64,000 bases of DNA from contig CP075492.1 in NCBI GenBank assembly GCA_021613535.1, positions 1,550,001 through 1,614,000 of the forward strand. Direction: 5' to 3'. A program made the translations under genes and the position numbers. The DNA comes from Adineta vaga. Taxonomy: Eukaryota; Animalia; Rotifera. Below the pieces are notes generated by a model. The model was given only the letters and a program-made list of their open reading frames with translations, did not search any database and had not been told where the DNA came from. Positions 4,053 to 64,000 of the stretch are shown here, in pieces; within the stretch, counting starts at the first letter, position 1, and the number at the start of each line of letters is the position of its first letter.

Positions 4053-4090
<38 letters not shown>

Positions 4091-8869: not shown

Positions 8870-9786
8870 GTGTGATGATACAAGACAATCAATTGGAAAT
8901 TTAAGTATTCGAATTCTATTTGGTAAATTAATGATTGATTTGTACGATTGGAATGAAGCTGAAAGATTATTTAATGAAGTTTATAAACAAATGATTGAAA
9001 ATAATCCATCACGTATTGAAGATTCATCAATTGTTCTCAATGATATGGGAAAGGTTTTATTTCGACAAGGAAAATACGAAAAAGCTCTCGATTTTCATCA
9101 ACGTACATTGATTATTCAACAAGAAATATTTCCATCGAATCATCCTTCTATTACTGAAAGTTTACACGATATTGGTGGAATTCTTCGACGTTGGAGAAAA
9201 ACTGACGAAGCATTTGATTATTATTAACGATCATTTGATCTTCGACAAAATTATTATAATTCTAATCATGTTGATATTGGTCATAGTTTAACTTATATTA
9301 CTGGAATTATTATCGATCGAAATGAATATCAACAAGCTTTAGATTATCAGCAACAAGCATTGAATATTTAAAAAAATTTCTTATTCATTTTATCATATTG
9401 ATATTGCTGATGTTCTTCATTGGATGAGTATTCTTTTCTTAAGTGAAGGAAAATTTTCCGAATCATTTAATATTGCTCAATAAGTCTTAGGAATTTATAA
9501 AAAATTATATCAACCATATTACCCTTCTACTGCATATATTTTATGGCATATTGGAAATATTCAATATCAACAAGGAATGATTGATCAAAGTATAGAATTA
9601 CAAAATGAAATATTAAATAAAATAAAAGAGTCTCTTCCATTTGATCATCCAGATATTATTTTATTTCTTAATTCACTTTCTGATAAATATTTTCATGGAA
9701 AAGAAAATTATGATAAAGCTATAGAATATTATCAACAAGCTTTGAATATTTTAGAAAAATCTCATTTATCACATATTCCATCTTGA
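8870..9786 (+). pseudogene. Decayed TPR-repeat (kinesin-light-chain-like) gene
   Basis: TPR-like text (GKYEKALDFHQRTL...PSNHPSITESL, NYDKAIEYYQQAL) broken by in-frame stops at ~9225, ~9369 and ~9481; ends abruptly at a TGAGGGTGTGGG motif. Confidence 0.8.
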
Positions 9787-15710: not shown

Positions 15711-18700
15711 ATGGCATCAGTTTCAAGTACTTGTCTAGAACCAATAGCTATCATAGGAATAGCTTGTGAATTTGCAGGTGATATTCATTGCGCAAGCGAT
15801 TTATGGCAAGCACTAAAAGAAAGTCGCGATGTTGGAAGCATTATTCCACGTGATCGATTCGATTTAGAATCATATTCTGCTCATATGTTAAATATGGATA
15901 ATCACGGGCAACTTCATCAAAAGCTTCTTCGTCGAGGTTATTTCCTATCAAACAATCAATGGGATATGTTTGATGCAAGTTTCTTTGGGTTATCAGATGC
16001 TGAAGCAGGTAGCATCGATCCATGCCATCGATTACTTATGCTCAAATTTGTTCATTTACTCGATGACGCTGGATATAGCATGGAGAAAGTAAACGGATCG
16101 CGTACATCTGTTTATATTGGCCAATTCTCTACAGATCACGCTGCTACATCATTTAGAATGGAACCTGAACATCGATCAAGATTCCATGGACCTAATAGTT
16201 TACTGTACAATGCTGCAGCTCGATTATCTTATCATTTCAATTTGCGTGGTCCTAATGTTTCATTAGATGCTGCTTGTTCATCGTCATTACAAACTGTTCA
16301 TATGGCTGTTCAAACGCTTCGAACAAGTGAAGCAGATATGGTGGTATGCGGTGGTGTTAATGGTCTTTATGCACCAGAGAATTTTCTGTGGAGTTCCTTG
16401 ATTAGTGCTCAATCACCAGATGGTCGAAGTCGATCATTTAGTTCTGATGCAAATGGTTATGCTAAAGGTAAAAAATTTATATAAATATATTGACAATACT
16501 CTGTGTTTCTAGGTGATGGTCTCGGTCTTCTCTTATTGAAACGATTAAGTGATGCTGAACGTGATGGAGATCGTATATATTGTATTATTCGTGATGTTCT
16601 TAGTGGTCATGATGGAAATGAAGACAAAAACAGTTATGTTGTTCCATCAGCTGCTGGACAGGCACGTCTCCTCAACGATATATATAAACATGCAAATGTT
16701 GATCCTCAACGTATCTTTTATGTTGAAGCACATGGCACTGGTACACTTGTTGGTGATCCTATTGAAGCCAATTGTTTAGGTCAATTTTTTAATCGTTCAA
16801 CTATTGATCCACCATTATTGATTGGTTCTGTCAAGAGCAATTTGGGACATACTGAAGGAACTGCTGGCATTGCTGGACTTATTAAAATAGCTATGTGTAT
16901 GCGTCATCGAGCTATTCCATCAAATATGCATTTTACATCACTTAATCCTAAAATTGAAGCAAAACGATATAATCTTCATGTTGTTCAACATTATGTACCG
17001 TTCCCTTCTTACGCTGACATTGAACCCATTGCTATAGGTATAAATTCATTTGGAATAGGAGGAAATAATGCACATGCTATCGTTGAAGAATATCGATCAA
17101 CTAGGAATCCGATTGTTAATGGATATCGTGAAGAGAATAAACAATATATCATTTTTATTTTCTCCAGTAAGTGGTGTAGATGAATTTATTATATTACCAA
17201 CTATCTTACTTATTTTTCATTTTCAGCAAAAAGTTCTAAATCTCTCAAAGATCAAATAGTTCAATTTAATCAATGGCTAGAAGAAAAATCTTTCATTGAT
17301 ACAAATAATGAACATGCTTTTCTTCAACATATCTCTCAACAACTTTTACTTCATCGAACTATTAGTCATACAAATTTATGCATCTTCGTATTTGCTGATC
17401 GTAAACAGTTGCAAGAACAAATCAATGCTTTTCTTGTTGAACAGACAATAGCTGGTCTCTCGATAGCATCACGTCCAACAGAATCTCTATCAACAAAAAT
17501 ATGTTTTGTATTTAGTGGACAAGGACCACAATGGTGGGCGATGGGTCGACAATTGTATGAAAGTGAACCTGTCTTTACACAATGGATCCAACTAATTGAT
17601 AAAGAAATGAGCAAAATTAATAATGGTGAATGGCGATTATTAGAAGAACTAATTGAAAAGAAAAATGAACAAGAATCTCGTATTAATGATACAAATATTG
17701 CTCAACCAACATTGTTTGCTATTCAAGTCGCTCTTGCAGCTCTACTTGTATCATGGAATATTTATCCTTCAACTATTATTTCACATAGTGCTGGTGATCA
17801 AGCAGCTGCTTTTGTTACAGGTCGTCTTAGTTTACAAGAAGCGGTTCGTATCGTTTATCATCGATCACGTCTTCAAAATCGAAATACACGACAGGGTGGT
17901 CAAATGCTTGCAGTTTCGATGAGTGAAGAAGAAGTACAAGAGAAACTTCTCCAAGGTATTGAACATCTTGTTTCTGTTGCTGTTGTTAATAGTCCTCGAT
18001 CAGTAACATTGAGTGGAGATGAAAAGATTATTCATGAATTACAACAAATCCTTTCTACACTTTATCCAAACGTTTTCAAAGCTCGTCTTCGTATTGAAAA
18101 TGCATTTCATTCTCATCAAATGGATCGATTTAATATTGAAAAAGAAATGTTGTCATCTCTCAAAGATATTCGAGGATTACCATTACAAGATGCACAGCAA
18201 ATCTTTGATCCAAAATGTGCACAAGCTCATCTTTATTCAAGTGTTATTGGTAATAAACTAAGTGATGATATACCAGTTGATGCACATTATTGGTGGACAA
18301 ATGTTCGACATTGTGTTCGATTTCGTGATGCTATTGCATCCATTATTAAAGACGATGCTGCAGATATTTTCTTTGAAATTTCACCACATCCAGTGTTAGC
18401 TACTTCTATTCGAGAATGTTATGAATCTAGCAATCATCGACAACCACTCATTCTTCCAACATTAAAACGAAAAGAAAATGAACAAATAACATTACTCACT
18501 AGTATAGCACAATTAACAGCATCAACTGATATGTGGCAAAAATATTTCGATACTCGAAATATATTAGCTACGAAAGAAAATGAATTATTACTTGATGACT
18601 TTCCTCTATATACATTCGATCTTAGTTCATGTTGGTATGAATCAAAAGATTCAGTTATGAAGCGTTTAGCTAATCGTATTCCTACTCATCCTCTTCTTGG

Positions 18701-21700: not shown

Positions 21701-24360
21701 TGTTCAGTGTGTTGGTATTAATTTTCGTGATGTACTCAAAGCGCGAGGTCTCTATCCACATACACACAAGTTTGCACAACTCGATGAACATCAACCACAT
21801 GCTGATCGAGATACAGAACCAGGTTCAGATTTTGTTGGAATTGTAGTTCGTTCATGTCCTGGTGTTAGTATTCAACCTGGTGATCATGTTCTAGGTATCT
21901 CTGTCAATGGTGTATTTCATTCACATGCTGTTGTCGATTCCTCTCAAGTGGTACCTATTCCAAGTGGATGTCCTCTCACTGATGAACAACTGTCAGCTAT
22001 GCCTACTGTCTGTTTAACAGTCATATATTCTCTTAAATACCGTGTTCATCTTCGACGTGATCAAACTGTTCTCATTCATGCAGCAACAGGAGGTGCTGGT
22101 CAAATTTGTATTCAATATTGTCAATATATTGGTGCTCGGATCATAGCTACAGCTGGAACTGAAGAAAAACGTCGTTTTCTTCGTGAACACTATGGTATTG
22201 AACATGTATTCAATAGTCGAGATACTTCTTTTGTTAATGGTGTACGCAGTGTTGTACCCAATGGAGTTGATATTGTTATTAATTCATTATCAGGTTCTCT
22301 TCTCCAAGAATCTGTTAAATTACTTGCCCATCATGGTCATTTTGTTGAATGGGGTAAACGAGATATTTATGGTAAAAGTCAATTATCTATGTTTGAATTG
22401 CGATCAGACTGTAGCTTCCATGTAATTGATTTGGTTTCGCTCGCCCTCTCACAACTAAACTGTGTACCTTTGATGTTACAAGAAATGATTGACTTATGTC
22501 TTGAAGGTAAGTTAAAACCAATTGAATCAACAGTCATTTATGAGCCATCCAAGATAATCGAAGCATTTATGAAAGTGAGTAGTGGTCAGGTTATAGGCAA
22601 AACAGTTATTCGATTAACTAACTCTGATGAACCACTAGCATTGAATACTGAGCAATTCAATAATTCGATTGAAGGTAATTTCTAGTTTTCTTTTGTTATA
22701 TGATTAATAAATTGATGTAGGCAACAATGATACAATGTTCACTTCGGAAGTATGTAGGAGAGGAACAATTCTGATTTCTGGTGGTTTTGGTGGTCTCGGA
22801 TTGGCAATGACACGTTGGATGATAGAGAAACGAGATATTAAACGTGTGATATTGCTAAGTCGTCGTACATTAGCTGAACTTGAACAACCTTCCAATCCTC
22901 AATACGAAGAATGGTTACGAGTAAAACAAACAATAAATCAGTATAATGCTTATGTCGATGTACTTCAAATTGATGTGACAAATTTCGATCAAGTGCATTC
23001 TCTCATTGAAAGACTTAACCAAACTCCTTATCCTGTTCGAGGTATTATTCATAGTGCTGCCGTCGTCGAAGATCTTACATTAGCCAATATGACAGAAGAA
23101 CATTTGACACGAGTAACATCAGCTAAAGTTCATGGTGCTTGGATTCTTCATCAAGCAACACAACTTACAAATACTCCAGTTCATTTTTTTATTATGTTCT
23201 CATCTATTCGAAATCATTTATTAGAATTAGCATCTGCGAGTTATAATGCTGCCAATCAATTTCTTGATGCTCTTGCTCATTATCGCATGACAAAACTCAA
23301 GTTACCTGCTCTTTCTGTTAGTTTACCAGCTGTAAGTGGTGCTGGTATGTTTCATCGGCAACGAGATTTACTAGCAAATTTTCAAGCTACACATGGTTTT
23401 GAAACGGTGCCAACAGTGACTGTATTCGAGCTGATTGAACGCTTCTACGAAAATGAGAAGACTTGTTCATGTCCTATTATTTTTACTGTTAATTGGCAAA
23501 CATTATATGAAAGACGTCATAAATTACCCCTCTTTCAATTGAGTAAAATAGTAGAAGAACGGTACAAAACTCTGAGTCTTGAAAACACATCATCAACATT
23601 ATCAGGACCTATCAGTAGAATCGATTTAAATTTGAGTACTAAAGAAAGCATTATTGAACGAACTCAAGCAGCGGTAGCTCGATTACTTGGTGCATCAACT
23701 ATTGATCGTATTTTGATTGATCGCTCATTGATTAGTCAAGGAATGGATTCATTAGCTGCTCTTTCTTTATATAATTGGTTAGGACAAGAAACTGGCATTT
23801 ATATACCAATGGCTGATCTTCTTCAAGGTCTTTCTATTGAAAACATTGCGTCAGTCGTCCATAATAAATTCTACCAACAACAGCAAATTGTTTCAACAAC
23901 GACTAAAGAATATGATATAGACGTTGATCTAATAAAGGAAAATGAAGTCAATATAACTGGTAGTCTTATCTATACTGGCACAGAAAATATTATATGTCTA
24001 GGATCGATGCTTCAGAACACTGGTTCAGTTCTTTTCTATATTACGAACAAGCCAACGATTGATATTAACGATTCGTTTAGATTACATATCAACAAAAAAT
24101 TATTCAGTCAGCAGAGTCCTAAAGCATCAGTTATCACCTATGCTATACAAATACCATCAATGCCATTGACTACAGATATATCTAAATATGCTCGTAACAT
24201 GATTTTACAAATACGTCGCATTCAACCTCGTGGACCTTATCAATTAATGGCTTTAGGTAACACACCAGAGGAAAACATCGCACATGAAATAATCAAACAT
24301 CTCAAGGATCATTCCCTTGTAATCGATATTCAATTGGTTTTATTCGACGGTCAGGACTAA
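15711..24360 (+). CDS. Highly reducing type I polyketide synthase KS-AT-DH-(degenerate MT)-ER-KR-ACP-(degenerate TE); 4 exons (15711-16467, 16513-17166, 17227-22674, 22721-24360)
   Basis: KS DAACSSS/EAHGTGT/SNLGH; AT FSGQGPQW, SHSAG, NAFHS; DH HPLLG, DHKIQDSILFP, LLDACLH; ER LIHAATGGAG; KR ISGGFGGLG, YNAAN; ACP GMDSL. Three short GT-AG introns restore one continuous frame. Confidence 0.95.
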
Positions 24361-25281
24361 AAGACAATATTTCAAATCTTTCTTTTAGAGTTATTTGTGA
24401 GTCAATCACTTTGAATTTTTTATTATCTACTTAATTCCGCACTATAAAATCGCTGCTAGAACTCCAGGTCGTTATAATTATAAAATTTGGAAGTCATATT
24501 TGGAAGTTTTAGAAAGTTTCTTTAGCATCACTTTAGCAGATAATTACTAAAATTCTTCATGAGGGCATTTTGTCACACAGGTATCTGGACGCAGAAAAGA
24601 ACTTAATCGTTTTGGCTAGATAAATTATACTTTAAAGTATGCAAGGATCTTTATATGGTTCACTATCGAAAATATTCCCGTTAAGTCCTTAATTTTTCCA
24701 ATAGTTACAGATTGGATAAATTTTCAAGCATTTTAGAGAATTCTTACTGATTATATAGATAATTTTTCTCAAAATGTCCAAGAATTTTATATTGATAAAT
24801 AGAAATTTATAAAAATTCTTACGATAAGATCTTGAGTTTTGAATCTTCTGTGATGGAAATACCAATAACTAGATTTTGAAAAGTTTTAGAATACAGGATT
24901 GACCATATATCTTGTAGATCTACTTTACTGGCGTAAGCTTATACGAGCGAGTACATTTTTAGATTAGTAATTCTGCTATTCAGAAGCTGATTATAACTTT
25001 AAAAGATTTAATTCATATACAATGACCTCTATTGATTTCTGATATTTTCCAAAGATTATCGACATAATCTCGAAGAATTATTCACATCCTTGAAGTGATA
25101 TCATGATTACTCCCGATATTTCCAATGCAGAAATTAGTTTGCCTCACTTTGAAACTTATCGCATGTTTTATTGTACACATATTATATTTCACTACTATAC
25201 TTACTTACACTATTGTAGATAAAATAGGCTTTTTATTTTACATTATCAAGCACCGATTTTACAATTCTTCTATTACAAAAA

Positions 25282-26941
25282 ATGCTTTCACGTAAACAAT
25301 TGACTGTAACAGTTCCAACAACTGTCCAAAATAAACAAGGTCTTGAAGCTTCAGGTCGAACAGAAGCTGTAGCTTCACTTGTTCAACAGCGGATATATTT
25401 ACATGAAAAGTTATATTTTAGTGATTCTAATATATCTGTTTACAACATATTGGTTCCACTGATGGTACAATGCGGCTCAGTATTAGTTGAACAGATCCAT
25501 TCATCGTTTGTAAAAATGATTCAGGAACAGGCAGTTCTTCGCTCATCAGTTCGCTACAATCCAGGGAATAATCAAGTCGAGCAATTGGTTCAAGATTTTG
25601 ATAAGGATATATATTCTTTTCAACATTCACATGGTATTTTGACACCTGAGCAACTTGATATTTTACTTACAAGTGAATTAACAGGCAAATACTTTGATGT
25701 CGAAAAGGGAAGAGTCACTAGGTGCCACGTAATCCAGCGAAATGTTGGCAACAGTGATATACTGTTACAGCAAGGCGATTGTGTTATTTTTAATATTCAT
25801 CACATTGCTCTCGATAACGTTTCACTTAAATTATTCGTTCAAGCATTTGAAAAAGCATGCTGGGCTGATAAGTCTGCTCAATCAATGTCAAAAGTACCAC
25901 AGTATATTGATTATACAATTTATGAGCAGGCATTGTTAGTGGACCCAAGTCCAAATGCAAAAATGAACAAAGCTCGTCTATTCTGGAACAATCTATTAGA
26001 TGGCTATGATTGGAATAAAGTACAAAATCTAATGCCAGATCAAGTGAGAAGTTCTCAAATACGGTCTGGCCATGCTTATTCAACAACATTTAATATCAGT
26101 GAACATGTTGTGAATGCAATGATGCAATTCTCTACAGCAAACAATCTAACTATGTTTGCATTGTCACTCGCCTGTTATTATGTGTTCCTATTCAAATTAA
26201 TCGATGATGATGATTTGTGTGTAGCAGGTGTTACAGCCAATCGATATGAACCAGAGTTTAAAGATATGATTGGCATGTTTGTCAATCTTCTTCCATATCG
26301 AATCCAAATGAGGCCAGCTGATTCATTTTATCATTTTGTTCAAAAAGTGCAACAGCTGAGCAATGACATTCTGCAATATTCTTATCTACCTTATCAAGAA
26401 ATTATCAATTCCAATGGGAAATCAGAACATAATTTACTACCCTCTACATCATTCAATTATGAATCAATTCTGTCTTTAACTCAGAAAACCACTGCGGAAA
26501 TAGCTGTCAATGAAAATTCTATTCTGTGTAGCTATTATGAAGAAGATCGCTCTCGCGGTAACGGCGTTACATTATTCGATATGACTATAACAATATCACA
26601 TAGTCATCGTGAGCGAAGAACAAAATGTTTTCTTGATTGTTCAATCGAAACATTTAAAACACAAACTGATGTCGATTTACTTGCAAAACGTTTTCATCAT
26701 ATGATAGAACAACTCTTCTGTGTACCTATGATCCATGAATCAATCGATCAATTATCTATTTTGCTTTCGAACAAGCAACAATTTTCGTATCATCTCAATG
26801 ATGCCGATAACTTTTCATCTACTTTTACATCAGGTACTAAATTTGTTACTTTCATGAATAAATTATTTCTTAGTTTACTAGATGACACTAACGATTTGGA
26901 AACAATTACCTTTCACAGACTGGCTGATATTATAGACGAAG
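25282..26941 (+). CDS. NRPS first exon: N-terminal (starter-position) condensation domain
   Basis: ASLVQQRIYLHE, HHIALD, IGMFVNLLPYR; ends DIIDEG at donor GAAG|GTATGT. Confidence 0.85.
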
Positions 26942-50900: not shown

Positions 50901-53900
50901 GTGTATTGGTAAATAATTGTGGAAATGATTGGATGGTGTTGAATAATTGCTGTCGTTGAGGTTCATTTAATATAGAATTGGTCAAATCAGGTTTTTCTGA
51001 TGATGTTTGCTGATTTGTATGTGAAATATCATGAATGTCGGATGGAAATTGAGAGGAATCTTCGTGTAGGAAGTTGTGTCGGATCAGTGGAGGATTTGTT
51101 TTATGCGAAGGTCGATAGTAAGGTGGGGGTTTTTGAGATGAGTAGTAAACTAGTTGATGTGCACCATCGATGATAAGTTTGTGTTTGCGAATAAAGTTAT
51201 TGCCGATGATGCATGGTCGCCATAGATTTGGTACTACATATGTAAGATGCCAACGTGTGGTCTCATTGAACGTAAAAGGTAGATTTACGACCCATTTTAT
51301 GGTGAGTGGTGAATGGTCAGCTAGATGTAATGATAATGATGGGGGTGGTTTGTATTTTGTTTGAGTGAGTCGGGGGTTGAGTTGATTGAAAAGTTGAGAG
51401 TTAATAAGGGTAAGGGTGGATCCGGTATCGATCAAAAAGGTAATTGGTACTGCGCCAATTCTTCCATGAATTGTTAATGGGTGACTAGGGAAAGAGTCTA
51501 TAGTGTTTACATGTGATATTTTTGTAGATTGCGGGTTAGAATAATAGGAGTTTTGTATTCCCGCTTTACGAAAACTCCTTAATTGTTTTTTGGACGTTGT
51601 GGTAGTGATTGTTGGGTATATTCTGATGAATCATAGGTTCGGCGAGTTTCATTAAGGGGGCAGGTTGTCGCGTAATGGCCCGTTTCGTAGCAACGCCAGC
51701 ACGTTGGTGTATAAGGGGTGGTTGTAGTAGATTGTGTATTACGTGTTGAGTATTGATTTGATGTGTTTAATGCTAATAATGGCGTGTTTGTATTTAGTTT
51801 CGATCGTTGATTTGAGCGTCGTCTAGCTTCTTTGTTTCGTAAATATAATATTTCTTCCACTTGTTGAGCTTCCGTGATAATCTCGGGGAGAGTTAATGAT
51901 CGATTAGCACTCATCAATGTTAGCATATCAGGTCGCATTTTGCAGAACAAGTGTTTAATAAAGTCATTTTCTGTTTGATCAGGTTTTTGTTCAAACCAGA
52001 GTGAACGTAGACGAACGACAAATTCATTGATTGTTTCGTTGTCTTGTTGTTTGCATTCGTCCCATTCGTGTTCTTGTTGTGCAACGCGAATAGGGGAGTG
52101 AAATTGCGCCAAAAACTGTGGAACAAATTCGTTCCAGGTTTCAGGTAAGTTGTGTGTATTGTAAAGTTGACAGTACCATTCTAGAGCCGAATCTTTTAAA
52201 AATTGAGATATTCCTTGAAGTAGTGTATCGATAGACCATTTATTAACAGTTCGTGCATATTCCTCTACGCGTAGTAAGAATTGGCGTGGTCTATCCGTCG
52301 GTTTACCCGCAAATGTTGGAAAAGATGAGATGGGTGGAACAATAATTGTACTTGTAGCCGGTGGTGTTAGTTGATTGTAATTATCAGGAGACACTGTTGG
52401 AGTGATATATTGACGTGTTGGTTGTATAGGTGTATGAAGTTTTTGTTGTGTAGATGTTGTTGGTTTAGCATCAGTTTGAAAAATGTGGTCGCGTATTGCG
52501 GCAATATCTTCACGAATGGTGTGTATGTCAGCTTGTAGACGTGATTCAGTCGTTTCTAATTCCTTTCGGAAAGAAGTTCGAAAGGTGTCCATTTCTGCTT
52601 GAATTTGTGATTGTAGAGAATCCAAGTTAGTTTGTATAGAACGAATATTATCCGTGTGTTGGTTTACAGTTTCCGACGTTATGAGAACAGCCTTGTCAAT
52701 CTTTACTTTCATTTCTTCTGAAGTTGCCATGATAATTAAGAATGTGACTAATTAATTGATTATCGTTAATGTATAATAGGAGAGAGATTCGAGTAGACAG
52801 GGTCGCCAATTGTGACGTTTTCTGATACAAGAGATGATGTATGATATATGTATCTTTTATTTGATCCAAAGAAATCGTATCTATACTGTATTTCCCTCGT
52901 CCTTATATAGTTCTCGGTACATACAGTGTCACGCTACAGAAAAATATCAAACTCCATAGATAATATGTAAAATCTATTGCTATCACTAAGCGAGGTTATG
53001 GGTAAAAGAAACATACGATCAAAGTTTGCTCTAAGGGAAGATAATCTATGTCGAGCATGAGGGCAAGTACAAACATATCATGCATAAAAGTGGAACTATC
53101 ATAATATTTGTTGATCATTTAAATATCCACAAAAAGCTTGCTGTTGAATTAGATGCATCAATCTTTGACATATTCTGAATTATTATATTATGTTCAAGTA
53201 TTATCATTATGTTTGATGAAAAGAAATGGAGTTGTAGAAGGTGATATCATTTGTCAATGTGTTGAGCGAAGCTTGTCAATGGTAAGTAAATGGGAGACGA
53301 GTGTCTTTATATGTCCATGTGAGATTGTTATTGTTGTTTTTTTCTATATAGGTAATTGGAATGATGGCAATTGAAATGGTTGGATGTGTTTATTGTCCAT
53401 TATCACCTCGAGATCCTCCACAGCGTTTGCATGCACTTATTGAACAAACTCAAAGTCGTCTTGTTCTTGTTCATAATTTAACAAAAGCTAAACTTCAAGA
53501 TAATATATTATCACTTGATATTAATTGTATAGTGCTCGAAAATGATTTGAATAGTATTGAGATGAGTGGATTCTTGAATGTGATGATGAAAGCTGATAGC
53601 ATAGCATATGTAATTTTCACTAGTGGCTCAACTGGAATACCAAAAGCGGTAAGTTTAAGGGGGAAAAAGCGAAAAGTCGGTACTCCAGTGTACTCATTGT
53701 ACTCTCTCAATAAGTTATAACTATCCTTGAGATTTTTTTCAGTGTTTTCAAGTCCACTAGTGACCAATGTTACAGTGCACCAGTTGGAGTACAATACAAC
53801 TAAGACTAGCGAACTGGAGAGCTCAAATACTCCATGGTACTTCGAAGTACCATGGAGTATTTGAGCTCTCCAGTTCGCTAGTCTTAGTTGCATTGTACTC

Positions 53901-56900
53901 CAACTGGTGCACTGCAACACTGGTCACTAGTGGACTTGAAAACACTGAAAAAAATCTCAAGGATAGTTATAATTTATCGAGAGAGTACAATGAGTATACT
54001 GGAGTACCGACTTTTCGCTTTTTTTTCCTTGGATGAGTTGCTAAGCATCTGACTGATTTCTAATTGATTTTTGCATTTTCTTGTAGGCACGAGTTCGGCA
54101 TAGAAATTTCACAGACTGTATACGTTCTTTTATGAGCACCAATACATTCAACGGACACGATATAATTATACAAACGGCACGATGTTCATTTGATATTCAT
54201 GTTCAAGAAATTATGGGTTCATTGATTATGGGAGCTACACTCGTTATGCTTCACCCTAGAGGAACTCTTGATTTTGATTATATGGCGAATGTCTTTAAGA
54301 CCGCACAAATTTCATATATACATACAGTGCCTACTTTGCTTTACAGCTTTTTTACTTTTATCCTGGATACTAAAGCTGATAAAATTCTACAGCATCTTCG
54401 ATCATTGTCCAGTGGAGGTGAGTAATGAAAAAAAAACCATTATGTTTTAGAATCATAAATAATTTTTTCTAGGTGAACCATTTTCTGTTAAGTTAAAAAG
54501 CTTAATTTTGAACATCACTATGCCACAATGTATGGTGTGCAATGTGTATGGACCAGCAGAAACAACCATCGACGCTACGTTTCATGTTTTCAACATAATA
54601 ACCAGTAGCGACATTATCCCCATTGGCGCTGCACTTCCTAACTATCAATGTCTGATATTAGACGAACTATTGCAAAATGTGCTCACGAACCAAGATGGAG
54701 AATTGTTCATAGGAGGAATAGGTGTTTTTGCTGGATATCTTCATCGTGATGTTTTAACATCAAAAGTACTGATCTATATTGATGATGAATTATTCTATAG
54801 AACTGGTGATCTTGTTCGAATAGATAACAAGGGTCTTATTCATTACATTGGAAGAAAAGATTTTCAAATAAAGATACATGGACAAAGAATTGAACTCGGT
54901 GAAATTGAACGATGTCTACTCAACATATCATCCATCTCAGCTTCGATTGTTATCAAATGGAATAATGATCATTTAGTAGCTTATATTCAAAGTTCGAGTA
55001 ATGATGAAGAACAATTACGTCAGCATTGTCAATCTCATCTTCCACCACACATGATTCCATCCATATTTATCATCTTAGAAAAATTTCCTTTGAATGCAAA
55101 TGGAAAAATAGATCGAAAACATCTTCCTCAACCTCACTTCTCTTCAATAGACTCTAGAAATCATACTGAACTATTACAACCAAGAACTGATGTTGAAACT
55201 AAAATTCATGAGATCTGGTGCGATCTATTGAAACATGATGAAATCTCTATAAATACAAATATCTTCACTATTGGTGGTCATTCACTTGTCATCATGCAAC
55301 TCTTTCATCGATATAAATTAGAATTTCATCTCGAACAAAATTCTCTCTCCATTTCTCATCTTTTTCAACATTCAACTATTCTTCATCATTCTCAAATCAT
55401 TCAACAATCTCTTAATATTTTACAACGTATCTATAATTATCATTGGTCTCCATTACATCTCATTCAAGGTAGAGACTAGTTTTTCAATAATTGTTATGAA
55501 TTATGTTTTTTTATACTTTTTTTTTAGCGAAAGCATCTTATGCACAAGAACGCATCTTCTTACATGAACAAATTCGTTTCTCATCAGAACACAAACATAA
55601 CATGTATCTTATTCCATTACTTTATCGACTTTCATCTTCTACAGATCAAATGTTCATATCTCGATTTTATGATGCATTTCAACTCGTCATTAGAAAACAT
55701 AGTATTCTTCGTACAGCACTTTATCTTGACACAAATGGTATCATAATGCAACAATGCATAGGCGAAAATACTACTCAAGACGACATCAAAACTTATGAAT
55801 TTTCAGTTAGAACTCTTCACAGTGGTAATGATTTTGAACTGGCTGACGTTATCAAAGGAATATTAAATAAATCTGATCTATTCGATTTATCAAGAGGACA
55901 TGTTATCAATTGTCATATTCTTCGTTACCATCGATCTGAGAAAAATTTTTCGTTAGAAAATAATGATTTATTGACAAAAGATGATTACATATTGATAACT
56001 ATTCATCATGCAATGTTTGATGGATTTTCTACGGAAATCTTTCTTCGTGATCTTTCTGTTGCTTATGATTTGAATGATGATTTTCTCTCGAATGATAATA
56101 CTTTTCAATATATCGATTATTCTATTTATGAACATATTATGGATATGACATCTGCTCGTCAATTCTGGCAATTCGAACTTCAAGGATACAATTTTCAACA
56201 TCGGCTATCATTGCCATTTGATCGACAACATTTAGGAAGTGATCAACGATCAGGTTTAGCTCATGTTACTGAAATAACTTTCGATAGTGATATTGCACAC
56301 TCATTTATACAATATGCATCATCACATAATCTTACATATTTTCAACTTGGATTAGCTACATTCTATGCATTTCTCTTCAAATTAACTCATCATGAAACTG
56401 ATCTATGTATTTCTTCTATTAATGCTAATCGATATCGAAACGAACTACAAGATATGATAGGAATGTTTGTATCAACACTACCACATCGTTGTCAACTTGA
56501 TCATCATTGGTCATTCGATGAACTTGCTCAGCATGTACGAGAAAAATGTGTATCAATTCTTGAATATTCTTATTATCCATTACAACATGTTCTTGATGAT
56601 TTTCAAGTTAATCGATCAAATGTTTCATTTCTTGAAACAATGTTTGATTTTATCACAATCTCATCTGAAATCGATCGTTTATCGTTGGGCAACGAAAATT
56701 TGCAGCAAGTATCAATAGAACAATCGTTGGATTTGGCAAAATTTGACTTTTCATTGACATGTATTTATAATCCATTCTCTAATGACGATCAGTTAGCATT
56801 CTCTATGATTTGTTCACGTGATATTTTCGAAAAAACATCAGTCATACAATTTGCTGAACGATTTCACTGTATAATGGAACAACTTTTCGAAATGGAATCG

Positions 56901-59900
56901 AACAAGACTCTGTCGAATGACTTGGAAATATCGATAGATCGAATTTCTCTTATCTTAAAACAGGAAGCTGAAGAAATGAAAATGACTGTTTTTCGTCGAA
57001 TGGAAAATATTGTTGATGAAGGTTAGGAAATCAATATTGATTTAGCTATATCCTATTTTGCATTTATGTGAGACTATAAGTTGATTCTGATGTTGACAAT
57101 AGATTAACCAATATTGTAATGAGAGATACTGTTTATTATCAATATTAGACTTACCAATGACTTTTCTAAGATTTCATAGGATCAAGCTATCTGTCAACTG
57201 TATAATTGCATTCAACGTCAGATAGCAAGTTAAAGATGTATATAGAATAAATCTACTAGTGAAATGAAACGAAATTTTTGTATTGTTTGTCACATAAAAT
57301 TTTTATATGAATTGAAAACATTACAAAGAGATAAAACATGATGCTATAGTGACTACCATGATGTAAGCAAAAGTGTCTTATTGAGTATGAATATTTTCTT
57401 CATTTATCTTTTTCTTCTTCGTTGTTTTGTGTTTTATTCTTTTTCTCTTTGAGTTCCTTTCTTTTTGTCGTATCTGATAGATATCTATCTGATTTCAGGT
57501 TTCAGGAGTGGAAGTCTAGGTGTATCTTGGTGTTTACATTTGTCAATTTTTGAGTAGTCCAAAGTGAGACAATTTCAAAATTTCCTTCATATATTTCGAT
57601 TGGAATGATATTGAGACCTATAGTTATCACCATTGAACAGAGAACATGAAAATACAACGAACAATGTGTAGAAAAAAATAACGATTATTTTTCTGACCTG
57701 TTTCTGAATTCTTTTCGAAGACTAGTAGTTACAATTACTTCCTTATATGTTGAGTGTACATTCTCTAATCTTGAACAAACTGTGAGTTATGTGAATCATT
57801 AAAGTATGCTGCTTTTATCTCATAAGAGACAATAAGTCTATTCGCGTGTGCTAGGTTTTTTCAAAATAAAATAGCGGCTAAGTAATGGTTGTGATTATGA
57901 GAAAGGAAATTTTCATAGATATTATGTTGATTCCGCTTGATAAACGTTACTTTACTGTAGCACCAGCTTCATATGCTCAGAGTCGTATTTGGCTTAATGA
58001 ACGAATGCAGTTTGATCCTAATAAACCGGAAATAGCAATCTTCAATATGTCATTCCTTTATCGTCTCTCGCACCACCATACTTTATCAATTGAACGACTT
58101 CGACATGCACTTCAACTACTAGTCATGAAACACCAGTCACTTTGTACATTACTTACTTTCGATAAAGAGAAGAATCTGCTTATGCAACGGATCGCCAATT
58201 TTAATAACGTGACAAGTGAATTGTATGCATTTGTCGAAAGTGTTTACGAAACTGATGAGCATCTTAACGATATAATATACGAGGAAAAACGGAACCCTCA
58301 TCTTTTCGATCCTTCTCAAGGTCTTGTCTTTCGATGTCATATAGTCTATTACAAGCAAATCTCTTCAGATGATCTTCTCACCCATAAAGATATCATCATT
58401 TTCAACTTTCATCATTCTTTATTTGACTATCCATCTATGAATGTATTTCTTCATGATCTCAATCAAATATATATAACAGGTCAGTTAACAAATGATATTG
58501 AGACCAATCTACGATATCTTGATTGTAAGTATTCAATATTTTTGTCTATTTATTTGAATCAATCATCCTTCACCTCTCTTTCTACTTGCAGATGCAGTCA
58601 TCGAACGGCAACTACCAATGACTAGCGCAAGTATGTTCTGGTTTGATACTCTTCATAATTGTGATCTCGATCGGCGACTATCATTACCATTTGATCGGTA
58701 TCGACTTCTGAATGAACATCCAACCAATCATAATACATCCGTTTCTTTCGATTTTGATCCAAATCTTTCTCATCATCTTCTCATTTATGCATCATCGTAC
58801 AACATATCATTGCAACATCTTATACTCACCATCTACTATCTCTTTCTATTCAAAATAACAAATGGAGAAAAAGATTTAACGATTGCAATGACTATTGATA
58901 ATCGATATAGAGAAGAACTTAAACCAATCATTGGATTATTTGAGAGTATTGTTCCATTTAGATGTCAATTAGACTCTCATTGGTCTTTTCATCAATTACT
59001 TGACTATATTCATGAGATAACAACCAACACGATGAGATATTCATGTTTTCCTCTTCAACGCATACTTGATCAACATGGAGCTGTTTCGAAACCTAGATTT
59101 CTTGATACTTCATTTGAATTTCGATCATATCAAAACAATAAAAGTATGATTGACAATAGTGAACTTTATGAGATGCTTATTGACAATATCAATAATGACG
59201 ATGTAACCATGCGTAAAAGTGATTTCTCATTTCTAATCAATCATGATACCCATATCGATCAAGTCTCCTGTACAATCAATGCATCACTAGACTTGTTCAA
59301 CATTGAAACTATTCATATTATTGGACAACGATTTCATTTCATGTTACATCAATTATCTTCCTCGATTGCCAATCAACCGAAAAAGCCAATTTACGAATTG
59401 CCATTAATATTACCAAATGAACAATTACTTCTACAATCAGTGAATAATACGGAAGTGTCATTTCCTTCTGTCAAATGTATTCATCATGAATTTGTTTCTA
59501 AAGCAATGATATATTCACAAAAGCTAGCTGTTGAATTAGATGAGCAATCGTTGACATATAGTGAACTATTGTATTATGTTCAAGTATTATCTATGAATCT
59601 TCTAAATGAATATCATATATCTCCAGGTGAAATCATTTGTCAATGTGTCGAAAGAAGTATATCAATGGTGAGCTACTTCATATAAGTATCTGCTGTTTTA
59701 AATTAGGAAATCTGGTATAATTTAGATAATTGGTATAATGGGAATTTTAATGGTAGGTGGTGTATATTGTCCATTATCACCTCGAGATCCAAAAGATCGT
59801 TTATATGCATTAGTACAACAAACAATGTCTTGCCTTATTCTTGTTCATCGGCCTACTGTGACGAAAATGCTAGATATTGCGAAGTTATTAGATATTGAAG

Positions 59901-62900
59901 TAATACTGACTAATGCGAATTGGAGCGATGATCTCAAATTAGCGAAAGTATCAAGCATAATAGTATCACCTAATGATGTAGCTTACATTATTTTTACAAG
60001 CGGATCGACTGGCGTACCGAAAGCGGTATGCTTTTCACACTCTATATCAGATCGCTTTTAGTTTGATGCTTTATCCTAGGTTCAAGCCAGACACCGAAAT
60101 TTCTCAAATTTCATACAAGGTTTGCATCATACTGGCGTATTGCAGACGAACGATGTTGTGGCGCAAATATGTGCTCCTACATATGATGTGCATGTCATGG
60201 AAATTATTGGTAGTTTAGTTTTGTGTTCATCTCTCGTACTGTTACGCCCTTATGGCAACATGGACTTTTTGTATTTTACAAACATATGTGAAACTAAAAA
60301 CATCACATGTATTGCACCTGTTCCGACTTTCCTAGATTATTTGTGTGATGCTATTGAACATTTACAGAGTGATTCTTTGTTGACGATACGATCACTTTGC
60401 TTTGGTGGTAAGTAAATTATAAAAAATAGTGTCCAATGCATTTATCAAATTTCTAGGGGAACCTATATCAAGTAATCTTGTTCAACGCTTACAAAAACAC
60501 ACTACCAACAACTGTGCCATGTATAATATATACGCGCCAGCTGAAACTACAGTTGTTTCTTTCTATCACCGTGTCAATTTTATATGCCGTGAATCACATA
60601 TTGCTCTTGGTAGATTACTCTCTAACGAGCACTATAAAGTATTGGATATATACTTCCAGTATACACCTGTCGGACAACAAGGTGAATTATTTATTGGTGG
60701 AGCAGGCGTATTCGCTGGCTATCTTAGCCGTATGGATTTAACATCGAAAGTTCTTCTTGAAATTAACGATGAAAAGTTTTATCGGACGGGTGATCTCGTA
60801 AAAGTAGACCATGAGGGTCTTCTCCATTATGAAGGTAGAACCGATCATCAAATCAAATTACATGGACAAAGAATTGAACTTGGTGAAATTGAACGATGTC
60901 TACACAGCATATCATCCATCTCAGCTTGTGTTGTCATCAAATGGGGTGAAGATCATCTTCTTGCTTATGTTCAAAGTTCAGTCATAAATGAAAAGGAATT
61001 ACGTGACTATTGTCAATCACATCTTCCACCACATATGATTCCATCTCGCTTCATTATTCTTGATAAATTACCTCTAAATGCAAATGGAAAAGTTGATCGA
61101 AAACGTCTTCCAGCACCTGACTTCATTTCTCTCTCTTCAGTAAATCTCAACGATGTTAACCGATTGTTAGAACCAACAAGTGAAATTGAATCTATCATCC
61201 ATCGCATATGGTGTGATCTATTGAAACAAAAACAAATCTCTATAAATACAAACATATTCACTATTGGTGGTCATTCATTAATTATCATGCAACTTCTGCA
61301 TCGATATAAAGTAGAATTTCGATTAGAAATAATCTCAATTGCCATTAGTGATCTATTTCAACATCCAACAATCATTGATCATGCACAACTTATCTATCAG
61401 ATTGTGCATTCTAAATTGAATAAAGATGATTATTGTTGGCATTCAATAAATATCCTCACAGGTAAAGGTATCCTTTGAAAAAGAGTCTAATAATCACATT
61501 CTATTTCTTATTTTAGCTAAGGCATCCTTTGCCCAAGAACGCATTTTCTTAGATGAAAACATTCGCTTTTGTGCTTCTGCAGTAGATGATATTACAAACA
61601 TGTATGTTATTCCATTAATATATCGTGTTTCATCGCTAAATATTCATCATATATCAATTTCACGATTATATCATGCATATCAATGTATCATTAGAAAACA
61701 TAAGATTCTTCGAACAGCACTTTACCTTGATCGAAATGGTGTCATTGTACAAGACTGTCGAAATACGAAGTACTCACACAGTGATATCGAAACATATGCT
61801 TTTTCAATAGTGAATGTCTCCAAAGAAGATCACGATAAGAGTGAAGCTGTGAAGAGAATCTTGAATAAATCTGATTTATTTGATTTATCAAAAGGACATG
61901 TCATTAATTGTCACATTCTTCGTTCTCAGAATAGTTCAAATGGAAATGATGATGACATGTTGACTAGAGATGATTTGATATTATTTACTATACATCATGC
62001 TTTCTTTGATGGTGCATCAACATCAATCTTTATTCGTGATCTTTCTCTTGCTTATCAAGACGATAGTTCGCTTTTTGTTGATGTCAATTCATTTCAATAT
62101 ATTGATTATTCTATTCATGAACATATTATGGCTATGACATTAGCTCGTGAATTTTGGTTTGCTCAACTTCATGGATGTGATCTTCAACATTCATTATCAT
62201 TACCATATGATCGATCTCATTCATCAAACCACCACCGATCTGGCTTAGCTTCTACAACTCAAATAACATTAAATGAGTCTGTATGTACATCATTTCTACA
62301 TTATGCATCATCACATCATCTAACACTTTTTCAACTTGGACTATCGATATTCTATGTATTTCTATTCAAATTAACTCACAATGACACTGATTTGTGTGTT
62401 GGTACTATCAATGCCAATCGATATCGATCTGAATTATATAATATGATAGGAATGTTTGTAGCAACATTACCATATCATATTCACCTCGATGCAGATTGGT
62501 CATTTGATGAACTTGTTCATCATGTAAGAGAAATGTGTGTATCAATTCTTGAACATTCTCATTATCCACTTCAACACATTCTCAATGACTTTCATCTCAA
62601 TCAATCTAATCTTAGATTTCTGGAAACAATGTTCGATTTTATCACTTTGTCCGAAAATGAGACGTACTTATCGATGAATGATACAAGATTAGAAGAAGTA
62701 TCATTAGATCAATCATATGAAGTTAGTAAATTTGATTTCATGTTATCATTTGTTTATAATCCAACGTTAGAAAATAATACCAGATTGTCATTCAATTTTA
62801 TATGTTCTCATGATTTATTCGATGAGAAAACTGTTGCAAGTATAGCTGAACGATTTTCGTATTGTATGGAACAATTGTTGTTTCGATCGAATGAAATAGT

Positions 62901-64000
62901 GGATGAAGTGAAGACCTGTGTGACCACTGTACCGAAAGTTAACCTAATATTACCGAAGGAAGGAAATGAAATCAATGATGTTATATTTCAGCGACAATCA
63001 AATATCACAAATGAAGGTAGGTTTATCTTCTAATAAAAAATTTGTCGTTGGTGTTAAAGTTGCATATTAGGATTAATATCTGATATAAGTCTGTTGTGCA
63101 GACGCCAAGTAGCATTGCTACGATTTGCATATACGACTAGTGTTCGCATGCTTTTTCCTTGTAGAAGCAGCGGCATCTGCAAAGTTACTGTACAATATGT
63201 TGGTTAGCATTTTAGGAAATGCGTTGGTATGAAAATTGTGAGAAGTACCTCATTCAAGAGAAATGTTTCGTTCTTGATTTTTTTTGAAATTTATTTCTTG
63301 AATTTTGACATCGGAGTTCGAACACAGTATCTTGTCGATTTATGTGGAGTAGCATAGGAACTTGGCCGTTACACGTATGAAAGACGAATGGTTAATGTTC
63401 ATTTGATCAGTTTGCCGTCGCCAAAAAAAGAAACATTCTGTTGCTTTACTTTGTGGTAGAGAACGTAATATCTCAAAATTGCACGTTCACCAGTAGTATG
63501 TTTCGTGCATTTACTGTTTAGGGGAAATAAATAAAGTGATAATTGGAGAGACAGATCTAAAGAGGGGCTTGATTTAATTTTTTCGCTACAATAACTGAAA
63601 CAAAAATAGTAACTCCTTAACGTCGAATTCAGTGTGTACCCTTATGACAGTTCTAAAGAGTAATCGTGTTTAATATTGCAATCACTCCAGCATAATTTAA
63701 AACGGTTTCTCACGTAATTTCGCCGTGTTTTAAGAGCAGTCACACTCTTCAATTTTTTTATTCCCAACTCATTTTCGAAAACAAAAGTTAGCCATCACTC
63801 GCACGAGCACTGAATTTTTAATCATAAGGAGAAAAGACAAGGAAAACGGCTAGTAGGCGAAATGTTACATCATCCCGATCTAAATCATTGATACTTCTAC
63901 TGTAGCACCAGCATCGTATGCACAAACTCGCATTTGGCTTGATGAACAAATGCGATTTGATCCTGATCATCCGCAAGTTGCAATCTATAACATGCCTTTC
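25282..64000 (+). CDS. Giant multi-exon NRPS: C0-[C-A-T-C]x4-C..., running off the right edge; several frameshifts in this sequence
   Basis: Repeated C (HHxxxD, IGMFV.TLP), A (YIIFTSGSTG.PKA, YRTGDL, GRKDFQIK.HGQRIELGEIE, NGK.DR) and T (FTIGGHSL) motifs; each block ends GAAG|GT and the next begins AG|C(A/G)CC in phase 1. Joining across the long introns is inferred from splice sites. Confidence 0.85.
27830..28120 (-). mobile_element. Diverged LTR relic of the same family as 45651-46200, in the first NRPS intron
   Basis: TATCTTTTTATTTCATCCAAAGAAATCGCATCTATACTG...CTTATACAG matches TATCTTTTATTTGATCCAAAGAAATCGTATCTATACTG...CTTATATAG of the LTR; the right boundary is approximate. Confidence 0.75.
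28471..33717 (+). CDS. NRPS cassette 1 (C-A-T-C); frameshift at ~28790
   Basis: C HHAVFD; A motifs across ORFs 29121-32227; T FFTIGGHSL; second C exon 32257-33717 with HHAAYD. Confidence 0.88.
34991..35211. mobile_element. Short MITE (CMC/EnSpm-like architecture)
   Basis: TIRs TACTCTGTAAAAA / TTTTTACAGAGTA with internal GAACC/GGTTC repeats. Confidence 0.7.
36058..41133 (+). CDS. NRPS cassette 2 (C-A-T-C); frameshifts at ~39220, ~39898, ~40395
   Basis: C HHAAFD; A and T motifs; second C exon 39637-41133 with HHAFFDG. Confidence 0.88.
43907..57021 (+). CDS. NRPS cassette 3 (C-A-T-C), with an LTR element and a palindrome in two of its introns
   Basis: C NHTVFD (43907-45619); the A domain resumes after the acceptor at ~53351; T; second C exon 55528-57021 with HHAMFDG. 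Confidence 0.88.
45651..46200 (-). repeat. 3' LTR (~550 bp)
   Basis: Termini TGTGACGATT...GATTGTCACA; minus-strand TATATAA (~45745) and AATAAA (~45698); short GGGAG tract just upstream on the minus strand. An alternative end at GTCACA 45965 cannot be excluded. Confidence 0.8.
46299..48020 (-). CDS. env: Env-like class I fusion glycoprotein
   Basis: Signal peptide, furin site RHKR, hydrophobic fusion peptide LVSELIAIGIGSAALTMS, heptad region, Cys-rich ectodomain, C-terminal TM. Confidence 0.9.
   Translation of the reverse strand: MSKFFVLLIIIPIGSSLIPLPPGNVVHPTSGLAFRYLGQYAPADNIISFTVAIPLTQDMCYLLPLHTLHKIPQCGYDPNGSSSNDTTRHKRLVSELIAIGIGSAALTMSTINYAHVAQIQHDLETITRALTKLDSVAVELLHLQAGQLKLALALNHTQNALNRTINIINHHGIAIEHLGIFAKYLDNRLSTFIHSVESHFLHTSIADILANRLNLNFIHHRDLNKVAKHIALSTNVNFTTENLGPPLIELISRLLVQQTIHFLPKTSSNQTEGILGTLSISSFFADVKRRVTPFAVYELFSVPFYYYGKRIRLANLPKAIGIDYINFQLIQWTKSDFQTCNFNDMSVCRETPPIITKWNNTCLFQILNDSILSACRTEPYNEDIFYQQIGSQWIISTTRMQRCNFATAPTANTPQLIQNTGRTLSTVTLITIPSKTTLLCEQFHIPASPETSAPPVSLWDFSLVNFTYGEKFDMHDYLHNHTRWPKIPFISNELQEVIKFISQQSSPPSIVHVPSMPTLRDLHRHPIGILNITTLIIITLLFIILAVCFFIRRPRLPSVYFRVPTSTNVPTTT
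48119..51591 (-). CDS. pol: Pol (protease, RT, RNase H, integrase), -1 frame relative to gag; one 1-nt frameshift at ~49952
   Basis: LIDTGS, YLDD, LDACEYG, HDHPTAGH..CSAC, IDIMGP/SDNGPQF/ERVNR, KYQGP. Confidence 0.95.
51531..51591 (-). promoter_or_regulatory. -1 ribosomal frameshift signal (slippery heptamer plus H-type pseudoknot)
   Basis: A AAA AAC in gag frame, 5-nt spacer, stem AGGAGTTTT/AAAACTCCT, loop GCGGG pairing with downstream CCCGC. Confidence 0.85.
51579..52730 (-). CDS. gag: Gag with CCHC zinc knuckle
   Basis: N-terminal coiled coil, retrotransposon capsid motif (KQQDNETINEFVVRL), CWRCYETGHYATTC. Confidence 0.93.
   Translation of the reverse strand: MATSEEMKVKIDKAVLITSETVNQHTDNIRSIQTNLDSLQSQIQAEMDTFRTSFRKELETTESRLQADIHTIREDIAAIRDHIFQTDAKPTTSTQQKLHTPIQPTRQYITPTVSPDNYNQLTPPATSTIIVPPISSFPTFAGKPTDRPRQFLLRVEEYARTVNKWSIDTLLQGISQFLKDSALEWYCQLYNTHNLPETWNEFVPQFLAQFHSPIRVAQQEHEWDECKQQDNETINEFVVRLRSLWFEQKPDQTENDFIKHLFCKMRPDMLTLMSANRSLTLPEIITEAQQVEEILYLRNKEARRRSNQRSKLNTNTPLLALNTSNQYSTRNTQSTTTTPYTPTCWRCYETGHYATTCPLNETRRTYDSSEYTQQSLPQRPKNN
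52791..52808 (-). promoter_or_regulatory. tRNA primer-binding site
   Basis: TGGCGACCCTG begins 2 nt after the LTR end on the minus strand; complementary to a tRNA ending GGUCGCCA (Arg-like, unverified). Confidence 0.8.
52811..53103 (-). repeat. 5' LTR, truncated to 293 bp
   Basis: Identical to 45651-45943 except one base (position 8), then switches abruptly to NRPS sequence. Confidence 0.93.
53106..53312 (+). repeat. ~205 bp duplicate of NRPS exon end/intron start 45442-45650
   Basis: Direct repeat flanking the LTR element, with indels clustered at its left end. Confidence 0.9.
53657..54030. repeat. 374 bp spacerless palindrome inside an NRPS intron
   Basis: Centre TTC|GAA at 53843/53844; 187 bp arms with few mismatches; mirror-image ORFs in the ORF track. 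Confidence 0.95.
57961..63016 (+). CDS. NRPS cassette 4 (C-A-T-C), apparently intact
   Basis: C HHSLFD; A with variant YAPAE; T; second C exon 61517-63016 with HHAFFDG. Confidence 0.9.
63906..64000 (+). CDS. Start of NRPS cassette 5 (C domain), truncated by the window
   Basis: TAG|CACCAGCATCG encodes APASYAQTRIWLDEQMRFDPDHPQVAIYNMPF, matching cassettes 1 and 2. Confidence 0.88.

Follow-up and report, generated by a model that had tools for sequence, protein, structure and literature searches.

An intact polyketide synthase gene and a giant, probably inactive or decaying peptide synthetase gene in biosynthetic cluster 3.2 of the bdelloid rotifer Adineta vaga

We analyzed a 64,000-nt stretch of DNA from the bdelloid rotifer Adineta vaga (assembly Av20, chromosome 3, CP075492.1, positions 1,550,001–1,614,000, + strand), hereafter called the window and numbered from its first nucleotide. 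The window holds the first two thirds of the subtelomeric biosynthetic cluster 3.2, which has already been published (Nowell et al., 2024, Nat Commun 15:5787, PMC11258130). It encodes a polyketide synthase (PKS) and the greater part of a nonribosomal peptide synthetase (NRPS). In our best explanation, to which we assign a probability of roughly 0.6, an intact and transcribed PKS gene is followed by a single NRPS gene of ~77 kb, and the sequenced copy of the NRPS gene is inactive or decaying. The last point follows from frameshifts in NRPS modules 1 and 2 and from a young long terminal repeat (LTR) retrotransposon in module 3, which together make an inactive or decaying copy most likely.

An initial annotation of the window had described an intact reducing PKS and, about 0.9 kb downstream on the same strand, an NRPS that starts with a condensation (C) domain and contains at least four pairs of adenylation (A) and thiolation (T) domains, all with spliceosomal introns and in a probable bdelloid genome. 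These features were borne out. The PKS has a spliced frame of 2,832 codons without a stop and with all catalytic motifs. The first methionine of the NRPS, at position 25282, lies 921 bp past the PKS stop codon and opens a C domain, here called C0. Four complete A–T units (modules 1–4) lie within the window, and a fifth module begins at 63906. GT–AG introns occur in the PKS and in every NRPS module, and the placement on A. vaga chromosome 3 excludes a contaminant as the source. The annotation had missed the LTR retrotransposon at 45651–53101 and the frameshifting indels in modules 1 and 2.

The PKS gene and its boundary with the NRPS gene

The PKS is a stand-alone, highly reducing type I enzyme encoded by four exons. 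Its three introns are canonical (16468–16512, 45 nt; 17167–17226, 60 nt; 22675–22720, 46 nt) and were located by tblastn with the PKS homologues of A. steineri and A. vaga, the corresponding gaps being in-frame or frame-changing. The spliced gene of 8,496 nt has an intact reading frame, and its length matches that of the homologues (2,826–2,842 aa). Domain searches were run exon by exon with Pfam, here and for the NRPS, and the joined exon models were used for frame and motif checks only. The domains are arranged in the order ketosynthase (KS), acyltransferase (AT), dehydratase (DH), a weak methyltransferase-like stretch, enoylreductase (ER), ketoreductase (KR), and acyl carrier protein (ACP), followed by a degenerate, thioesterase-like tail. 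Pfam matches fall on three segments of the + strand, namely 15711–17183 (KS), 17409–22685 (AT-DH-ER), and 22735–24360 (KR-ACP).

The KS retains its Cys-His-His triad (DAACSSS, HGTGT, NLGH). The AT carries the active-site serine in a variant of GHSxG (SHSAG; Pfam Acyl_transf_1, 2.9e-60), and its NAFHS motif resembles the malonyl-type signature, xAFH. A full reducing loop is present, with the DH histidine motif (HKIQDSILFP, a Gly-to-Asp variant), the ER motif LIHAATGGAG, and the KR motif GGFGGLG together with the KR tyrosine (YNAAN); the Pfam families matched are PKS_DH_N, PS-DH, ADH_zinc_N, and KR. The ACP has its phosphopantetheine serine (GMDSL; Pfam PP-binding and ACP_SdgA_C). The closest homologues, all of ~2,830 aa, come from A. 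steineri (69% identity) and from A. vaga itself (paralogues, 66–67%), and the nearest relatives beyond the bdelloids reach only 28–37% identity. On our own reading of the sequence, the C-terminal ~170 residues (23850–24357) look like the start of a thioesterase (RRIQPRGPYQLMALGNTPEE), but neither the GxSxG serine nor the remainder of the thioesterase fold is present. Possibly, this tail is what remains of a docking element.

The PKS is a separate gene from the NRPS. Three observations lead to this conclusion. First, the PKS stop codon (TAA, 24358–24360) coincides with the end of the homologues. Second, the closest PKS homologue, in A. steineri, has its own gene model, and a 3,946-aa NRPS model starts 567 nt downstream of it. 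Third, contigs of probable RNA origin end 80–105 nt past the stop codon. For the latter analysis, contigs of sequencing runs were placed on positions 23001–29000 (6,000 nt). For runs X13 and X14, no library type is recorded, and they were judged to be RNA from the coverage pattern; X22 was guessed to be RNA. Contigs of these three runs are confined to 23001–24465, that is, the last PKS exon plus ~100 nt, and they end at 24440 and 24465, whereas the DNA run X2 covers the whole stretch. Thus, the PKS is probably transcribed into an mRNA that ends shortly past the stop codon, with a 3′ untranslated region extending to about 24440–24465. Of the transcripts presupposed by the initial annotation, those of the PKS 3′ exon were seen in the probable RNA contigs. 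X13, X14, and X22 gave no contig on 24600–29000, the region of C0 and the start of module 1, and contigs of this kind cannot prove absence.

The same data bear on the idea that PKS and NRPS are co-translated as one hybrid polypeptide. Both lie on the same strand only 921 nt apart, and the aa_length_est value in PMC11258130 sums the two. A hybrid is nevertheless hardly tenable: the PKS terminates exactly where its ~2,830-aa homologues do, no donor site exists at its end, the C0 methionine is shared with A. steineri, two genes are annotated in that species, and the probable RNA contigs stop at 24440–24465. The proximity of the two genes is a conserved trait. In line with the linkage in related genomes that the initial annotation had proposed to check, the PKS-to-NRPS arrangement is kept in A. 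steineri and in paralogous A. vaga clusters. A structure prediction for the complex of C0 (25282–26940) with the PKS ACP and its tail (23650–24357) scored 0.00, which is no evidence either way.

Architecture of the NRPS gene

To view the full NRPS, 60 kb downstream of the window were added. The NRPS is most likely one giant gene, as judged from its sequence, consisting of C0, eight modules of the type C1-A-T-C2, and a final C1-A-T unit with a terminal domain resembling those of Pls and PosA. The C1 domains of the nine modules start at 28.5, 36.1, 43.9, 58.0, 63.9, 73.9, 84.9, 90.9, and 96.8 kb, and the stop codon lies ~38.1 kb past the end of the window. The A. steineri NRPS homologue starts at the methionine equivalent to that of C0.

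Each module contains five short GT–AG introns at conserved places, with phases 1, 0, 0, 1, and 1. Short introns at the locus usually measure 45–67 nt, whereas the gaps between modules, and between C0 and module 1, extend over 0.9–5.9 kb. We conclude that these gaps are introns of one gene because donor, acceptor, phase, and frame match at nine junctions without a conserved start codon. In the alignments, conservation stops exactly at the donor GAAG|GTAGG, which follows C0 and each C2, and resumes exactly at the acceptor AG|CACCAGC, which precedes each C1. All nine junctions are of phase 1 and give the continuous frame ...DE|APASYAQxRIW. Hidden coding exons in the long introns were considered and rejected, as no conserved open reading frames (ORFs) were found there. 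Intron i4 aligns over its full length, at ~60–65%, with the equivalent introns of the paralogous cluster 3.1, indicating that the ~0.9-kb form of the junction intron is old. The intron identity of ~62% with cluster 3.1 fits neutral decay; the adjoining exon ends appear to be roughly 85–90% identical, judged by the look of the alignment. The longer junction introns contain remains of transposable elements, and intron i0 carries a fragment of the LTR family described below (75% identity) at about 27850–27983 (C3:1577850–1577983).

Alternatively, each C1-A-T-C2 unit might be a gene or mRNA of its own, through hidden small terminal exons or trans-splicing, and the assembly line would then consist of several proteins. 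The gaps are indeed far longer than the usual introns, and bacterial assembly lines are often divided into subunits at this position. Against this very improbable arrangement stand the lack of a conserved in-frame start codon past the C1 acceptor, the matching donor and acceptor phases at nine junctions, the absence of a conserved ORF from the gaps, and the A. steineri NRPS gene model, which spans a junction gap of 1.7 kb. In the A. steineri sequence CAJNOE010000112.1 (19232–21892), only 55 nt separate C0 from the C-terminal half of C1, which comes directly next. The first NRPS module of that species is thus without the N-terminal C1 exon, the same exon that carries a 5-nt deletion in module 1 of A. 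vaga.

The last NRPS ORF (~35–38 kb past the window) comprises the C-terminus of an A domain, a T domain, and a domain matching the Pls/PosA-type profile TIGR02353. The match is a resemblance only (E 1.5e-29; 102.9 bits against a cut-off of 423.1; profile positions 44–458 of 695). No match to a thioesterase or reductase release domain was found in this ORF.

Two C domains are present at each junction. A C2-type domain comes after every carrier domain, and a C1-type domain stands ahead of every A domain. C1 and C2 are 32–34% identical, C0 and C2 28–30%, and C0 and C1 24–25%. The HHxxxD motif is kept in all three types, as IHHIALDN in C0, FHHAAFDFPS in C1, and IHHAFFDGAS in C2. Among solved structures, the nearest relatives of C2 and C0 are ordinary C domains (AB3403, TycC, and LgrA). 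C1 is closest to TycB, McyB, and Txo1/2, and the first, N-terminal C1 exon alone matched no solved structure. The best matches of C0 comprise elongation C domains and one from the fungal hybrid PsoA, and no starter-C structure was listed. None of the three types matched an epimerisation domain of solved structure. The possibility that C2 is an epimerisation domain was rejected, since its solved relatives include no entry titled as such and the C-type motif IGMFVxTLP is present; on reading the sequence, we also found no EGHGRE-like motif in C2. A search with C2 of 1.84 billion representative sequences returned probable bdelloid fragments (38–64%), followed by large multi-domain synthetases (24–28%).

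The core motifs of the A, T, and C domains are present in all modules of the full NRPS. The A domains of modules 1–4 contain TSGSTGxPK (A3), YRTGD (A7), GRxDxQIK (A8), and NGK(I/V)DR (A10). The A5 motif reads NxYGPxE in modules 1–3 and has the variant form NIYAPAE in module 4. The T domains of modules 1–4 carry the serine of the GGxS motif (GGHSL; Pfam PP-binding). Ten-residue pocket codes of the A domains, which are our own reading anchored on the core motifs and made with no predictor, differ between modules: DIQHLSLIDK in module 1, DVQEISSISK in module 2, DIQHLSVIDK in module 3, and DVMALFIVVK in module 4. The codes of modules 1 and 3 resemble the serine code, which is a lead only.

The domains have diverged to very different degrees. 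Across the modules, the A cores share only 54–67% identity at the DNA level. By comparison, the C2 domains of modules 2, 4, 5, 6, and 8 are 97–99.9% identical, and the first-exon halves of C1 in modules 6, 7, and 9 are 99.8–100% identical. Near-identical C2 domains and C1 halves beside diverse A cores indicate that the C domains have been homogenised by gene conversion, a putative case of mosaic concerted evolution.

Frame defects and a retrotransposon in the sequenced NRPS copy

When the NRPS was tested for one continuous frame through all modules, it failed at modules 1 and 2. Compared with module 2, which is 96.6% identical over this stretch, module 1 lacks 5 nt in its first C1 exon (28788/28789), and its spliced model runs into a first stop at codon 153. 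Module 2 has lost one nucleotide at ~39220, just past the A10 motif, two at ~39897, and one at ~40397. The latter two deletions lie in C2, for which the C2 domains of modules 4, 5, 6, and 8 (98–99% identical) served as the reference. Module 3 is open: without its intron b (45620–53351), it has 1,589 codons and no stop.

Intron b of module 3 harbors a Ty3/gypsy-type LTR retrotransposon in the opposite orientation, inserted 31 nt into what was a 70-nt intron. The two LTRs (45651–45941 and 52811–53101) are identical at 294 of 295 positions. The ORFs for gag (51579–52730), reverse transcriptase (49933–51435), and RNaseH-integrase (48119–49813) are open, and Pfam detects Retrotrans_gag, RVT_1, RT_RNaseH, Integrase_H2C2, and rve. 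An additional 572-aa ORF (46299–48020) is env-like; its look-alikes in a language-model comparison, viral fusion or envelope proteins, provide no more than a lead. Genome-wide searches in the Av20 assembly (100.8 Mb in six contigs, a haploid representation) revealed other copies of the element with identities of up to 93%. By its sequence features, the retrotransposon is judged to be young and retrovirus-like.

A target-site duplication of 4–6 bp was not found at the element, whose flanks read TATAT and TAATA. In the place where it would be expected, a direct duplicate of 216 nt of host sequence is located, comprising the tail of the C1/A1 exon, the donor site, and 31 nt of the intron. The duplicate has a core of 154 nt at 97% identity and an indel of 1 nt of its own. 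The two copies share 93.6% identity, against 77–81% with the other modules. Farther downstream, intron c of module 3, within the A domain, has grown to 438 nt by a palindromic foldback element; at least 8 similar copies of ~366 nt, 81–84% identical, are found on several chromosomes.

Judged from this architecture, the ACP of the 2,832-aa PKS would deliver a saturated acyl chain to C0 in trans, which the nine modules would then extend by nine amino acids. In the sequenced haplotype, the NRPS is not a single open frame, owing to the 5-nt deletion and the three frameshifts, and it carries the retrotransposon with its 216-nt flanking duplication. The initial annotation had proposed a lipopeptide pathway. 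The architecture and the conserved linkage fit this proposal, but the NRPS copy at hand looks broken. The product predicted there, an acyl-peptide of at least 4–5 residues, is not simply readable from the genes, given nine modules, two C domains per junction, and a Pls/PosA-like end.

Several points speak against an inactive copy. Of the four indels, two fall within short same-base runs (AAAA to AAA and GG to G), where errors of assembly or polishing are conceivable. The only DNA contig over position 28790, from run X2, has GAAGA, but its loose end corresponds to module 2; because the contig derives from this paralogous module, it is no test of the 5-nt deletion. The other haplotype may be intact, Av20 being a haploid representation. 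Splicing may still proceed with a retrotransposon inside an intron. The first C1 exon is symmetric (phase 1/phase 1; 564 or 570 nt in the intact modules); if it were skipped in module 1, the frame would be preserved, as judged from the exon model, and the A. steineri homologue lacks that half-domain. The RNA nature of X13 and X14 derives from coverage only. Moreover, the missing NRPS contigs are weak evidence, since contigs show presence only and PMC11258130 reports a baseline expression of these genes near zero, with strong induction by fungus.

These points lead to a second, more doubtful explanation, in which the cluster is fully functional. The indels would then be errors or belong to one haplotype, the LTR element would be spliced out, the NRPS would be silent until a pathogen appears, and the line would give an N-acylated, nonapeptide-type product with the PKS. 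The catalytic motifs kept in every module, the open frames of modules 3 and 4, the diverse A cores next to homogenised C domains, the linkage conserved in A. steineri, and the two indels in single-base runs are all compatible with this view. According to PMC11258130, some 'defective' clusters are highly expressed, their defects possibly being assembly problems. The 5-nt and 2-nt deletions, however, are not single-base-run errors. Curators counted six frameshifts independently (PMC11258130), no NRPS contig occurs in the runs that show the PKS, and transposable elements have inserted into several introns. We therefore favor an inactive or decaying NRPS copy next to an intact PKS gene. The positions of all features are compiled in Table 1.

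Table 1. Positions of the features in the window
Feature	Position	Strand	Evidence or remark
Stand-alone highly reducing type I PKS gene, four exons	15711–24360	+	Pfam; tblastn
PKS-NRPS intergenic spacer	24361–25281	.	921 nt
NRPS exon 1, condensation domain C0 (IHHIALDN), phase-1 GT donor at end	25282–26941	+	Pfam Condensation, 2.6e-44
Long phase-1 intron i0, 1,529 nt	26942–28470	+	Joined frame ...IIDE|APASYAQ
Module 1 (C1-A-T-C2), frame broken	28471–33717	+	Pfam; alignment to modules 2, 4, 5, 6
Long phase-1 intron i1, 2,340 nt	33718–36057	+	
Module 2 (C1-A-T-C2), three frameshifts	36058–41133	+	Pfam; alignment to modules 4, 5, 6, 8
Long phase-1 intron i2, 2,773 nt	41134–43906	+	
Module 3, C1 exons and start of A domain	43907–45619	+	Ends at GTAAGT donor 45620
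Ty3/gypsy-type LTR retrotransposon in module 3 intron b, 7,451 nt	45651–53101	-	Pfam; LTR pair
Direct duplicate of host 45435–45650 (216 nt)	53098–53312	+	93.6% identical
Module 3, A-T-C2 exons	53352–57021	+	Pfam; exon model
Palindromic foldback element, 374 nt, 187-nt arms, 95% complementary, no spacer	53657–54030	.	
Long phase-1 intron i3, 939 nt	57022–57960	+	
Module 4 (C1-A-T-C2), intact, six exons, 1,591 codons, 0 stops	57961–63016	+	Pfam; exon model
Long phase-1 intron i4, 889 nt	63017–63905	+	
Module 5 start	63906–64000	+	Gene continues past window
Fragmentary retroelement, RT and RNaseH ORFs	198–1206	+	Window start

Relation to known systems and to the published cluster

To our knowledge, bdelloid rotifers are the only animals with dozens of horizontally acquired PKS/NRPS clusters. 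Some of these clusters are switched on against fungal pathogens. In synthetases of the surfactin and emericellamide types, an N-terminal starter C domain receives its substrate from a separate carrier of fatty-acyl or polyketide chains. The cluster studied here is similar in that a C domain comes first in the NRPS and a reducing PKS with its own ACP adjoins it on the same strand. Unlike these types, it has no thioesterase, and C0 is followed by another C domain (C1) ahead of the first A domain; among solved structures, C0 is best matched by elongation C domains and by that of PsoA. Pls and PosA each consist of a single module. The domain related to theirs (TIGR02353; 103 bits, cut-off 423) stands here after the T domain of the last ORF, where it closes a line of nine modules.

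The only published precedent that we found for tandem C domains is the icosalide synthetase, in which they serve in-line lipoinitiation (review PMC10510592). It likewise has two adjacent condensation-family domains, placed after a carrier domain and ahead of the A domain that follows, yet at a single module, whereas in A. vaga such pairs occur at nine junctions and consist of two types, 32–34% identical, both with HHxxxD. The order T-C2-C1-A is kept at all nine junctions, in the paralogous clusters, and in A. steineri. At the end of the line, a Pls/PosA-like membrane domain occupies the position of a thioesterase. It is conceivable, if rather unlikely, that an NRPS family specific to bdelloids uses this T-C2-C1-A order as a functional, non-canonical assembly logic and yields a new kind of animal lipopeptide. 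Each module would then catalyse two steps of the condensation type, comparable to the in-line lipoinitiation known from icosalide, the ACP of the PKS would act more than once, and the product would be released onto an amine at the membrane.

The assignment of the locus to cluster 3.2 rests on the ORF coordinates, which match once 1,550,000 is added: the published ORFs 1565711–1566484 (PKS_KS) and 1575282–1576949 (Condensation), for example, are the same as ORFs found here. Supplementary Data 9 of PMC11258130 lists the cluster as region3.2:1562128..1670576 on the + strand with 17,794 aa, the putative defect '6 frameshifts', NRPS_term, and 8 Av13 model hits. That entry shares with our model the PKS_KS/AT/KR, Condensation, PCP, and NRPS_term annotation and the subtelomeric position. 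It is an ORF and domain list only, and co-translation of PKS and NRPS is generally assumed there for length estimates. Compared with that study, the LTR retrotransposon, the long phase-1 junction introns, the independence of the PKS gene, the placement of the indels, and the tandem-C order are new; a search of its text and supplements found no mention of a retrotransposon or of the word tandem. A 2023 survey has also reported NRPS and NRPS-PKS genes in bdelloids.

The pathogen-induced cluster with a predicted product in PMC11258130 is cluster 5.2 (AVAG|g48151), which is strongly induced. Together with its A. ricciae orthologues, it belongs to the same bdelloid PKS-plus-NRPS family as cluster 3.2 and represents a different paralogue. 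The N-termini of the two KS domains are only ~70% alike (by eye, not computed; from the SeMPI file of PMC11258130). Unlike for cluster 5.2, the readable part of the publication reports neither induction nor a product for cluster 3.2.

In the 15.7 kb upstream of the PKS, we found no genes for tailoring enzymes, transporters, or phosphopantetheinyl transferases (PPTases). This region contains only the retroelement fragment at the window start and genes of the NHL, PAN, and TPR types. Telomere-repeat dimers, (TGTGGG)2, occur nine times in the window, compared with 0.06 expected. All of them lie within 2427–12479, upstream of the cluster, partly as facing pairs (6510–6552 and 9784–9827), and none is found in the cluster introns.

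The existence of the locus adds nothing beyond the published inventory. The added value is a precise gene model, with a separate PKS, one 77-kb NRPS with conserved long junction introns, and the placement of four indels and a retrotransposon. For expression studies or chemistry, another paralogue is preferable to this copy of cluster 3.2, unless the second haplotype is checked beforehand. If the T-C2-C1-A order proved to be a working logic, it would give rise to a kind of lipopeptide so far undescribed from any animal. The locus itself shows giant subtelomeric clusters in decay and being reshuffled by gene conversion and transposable elements.

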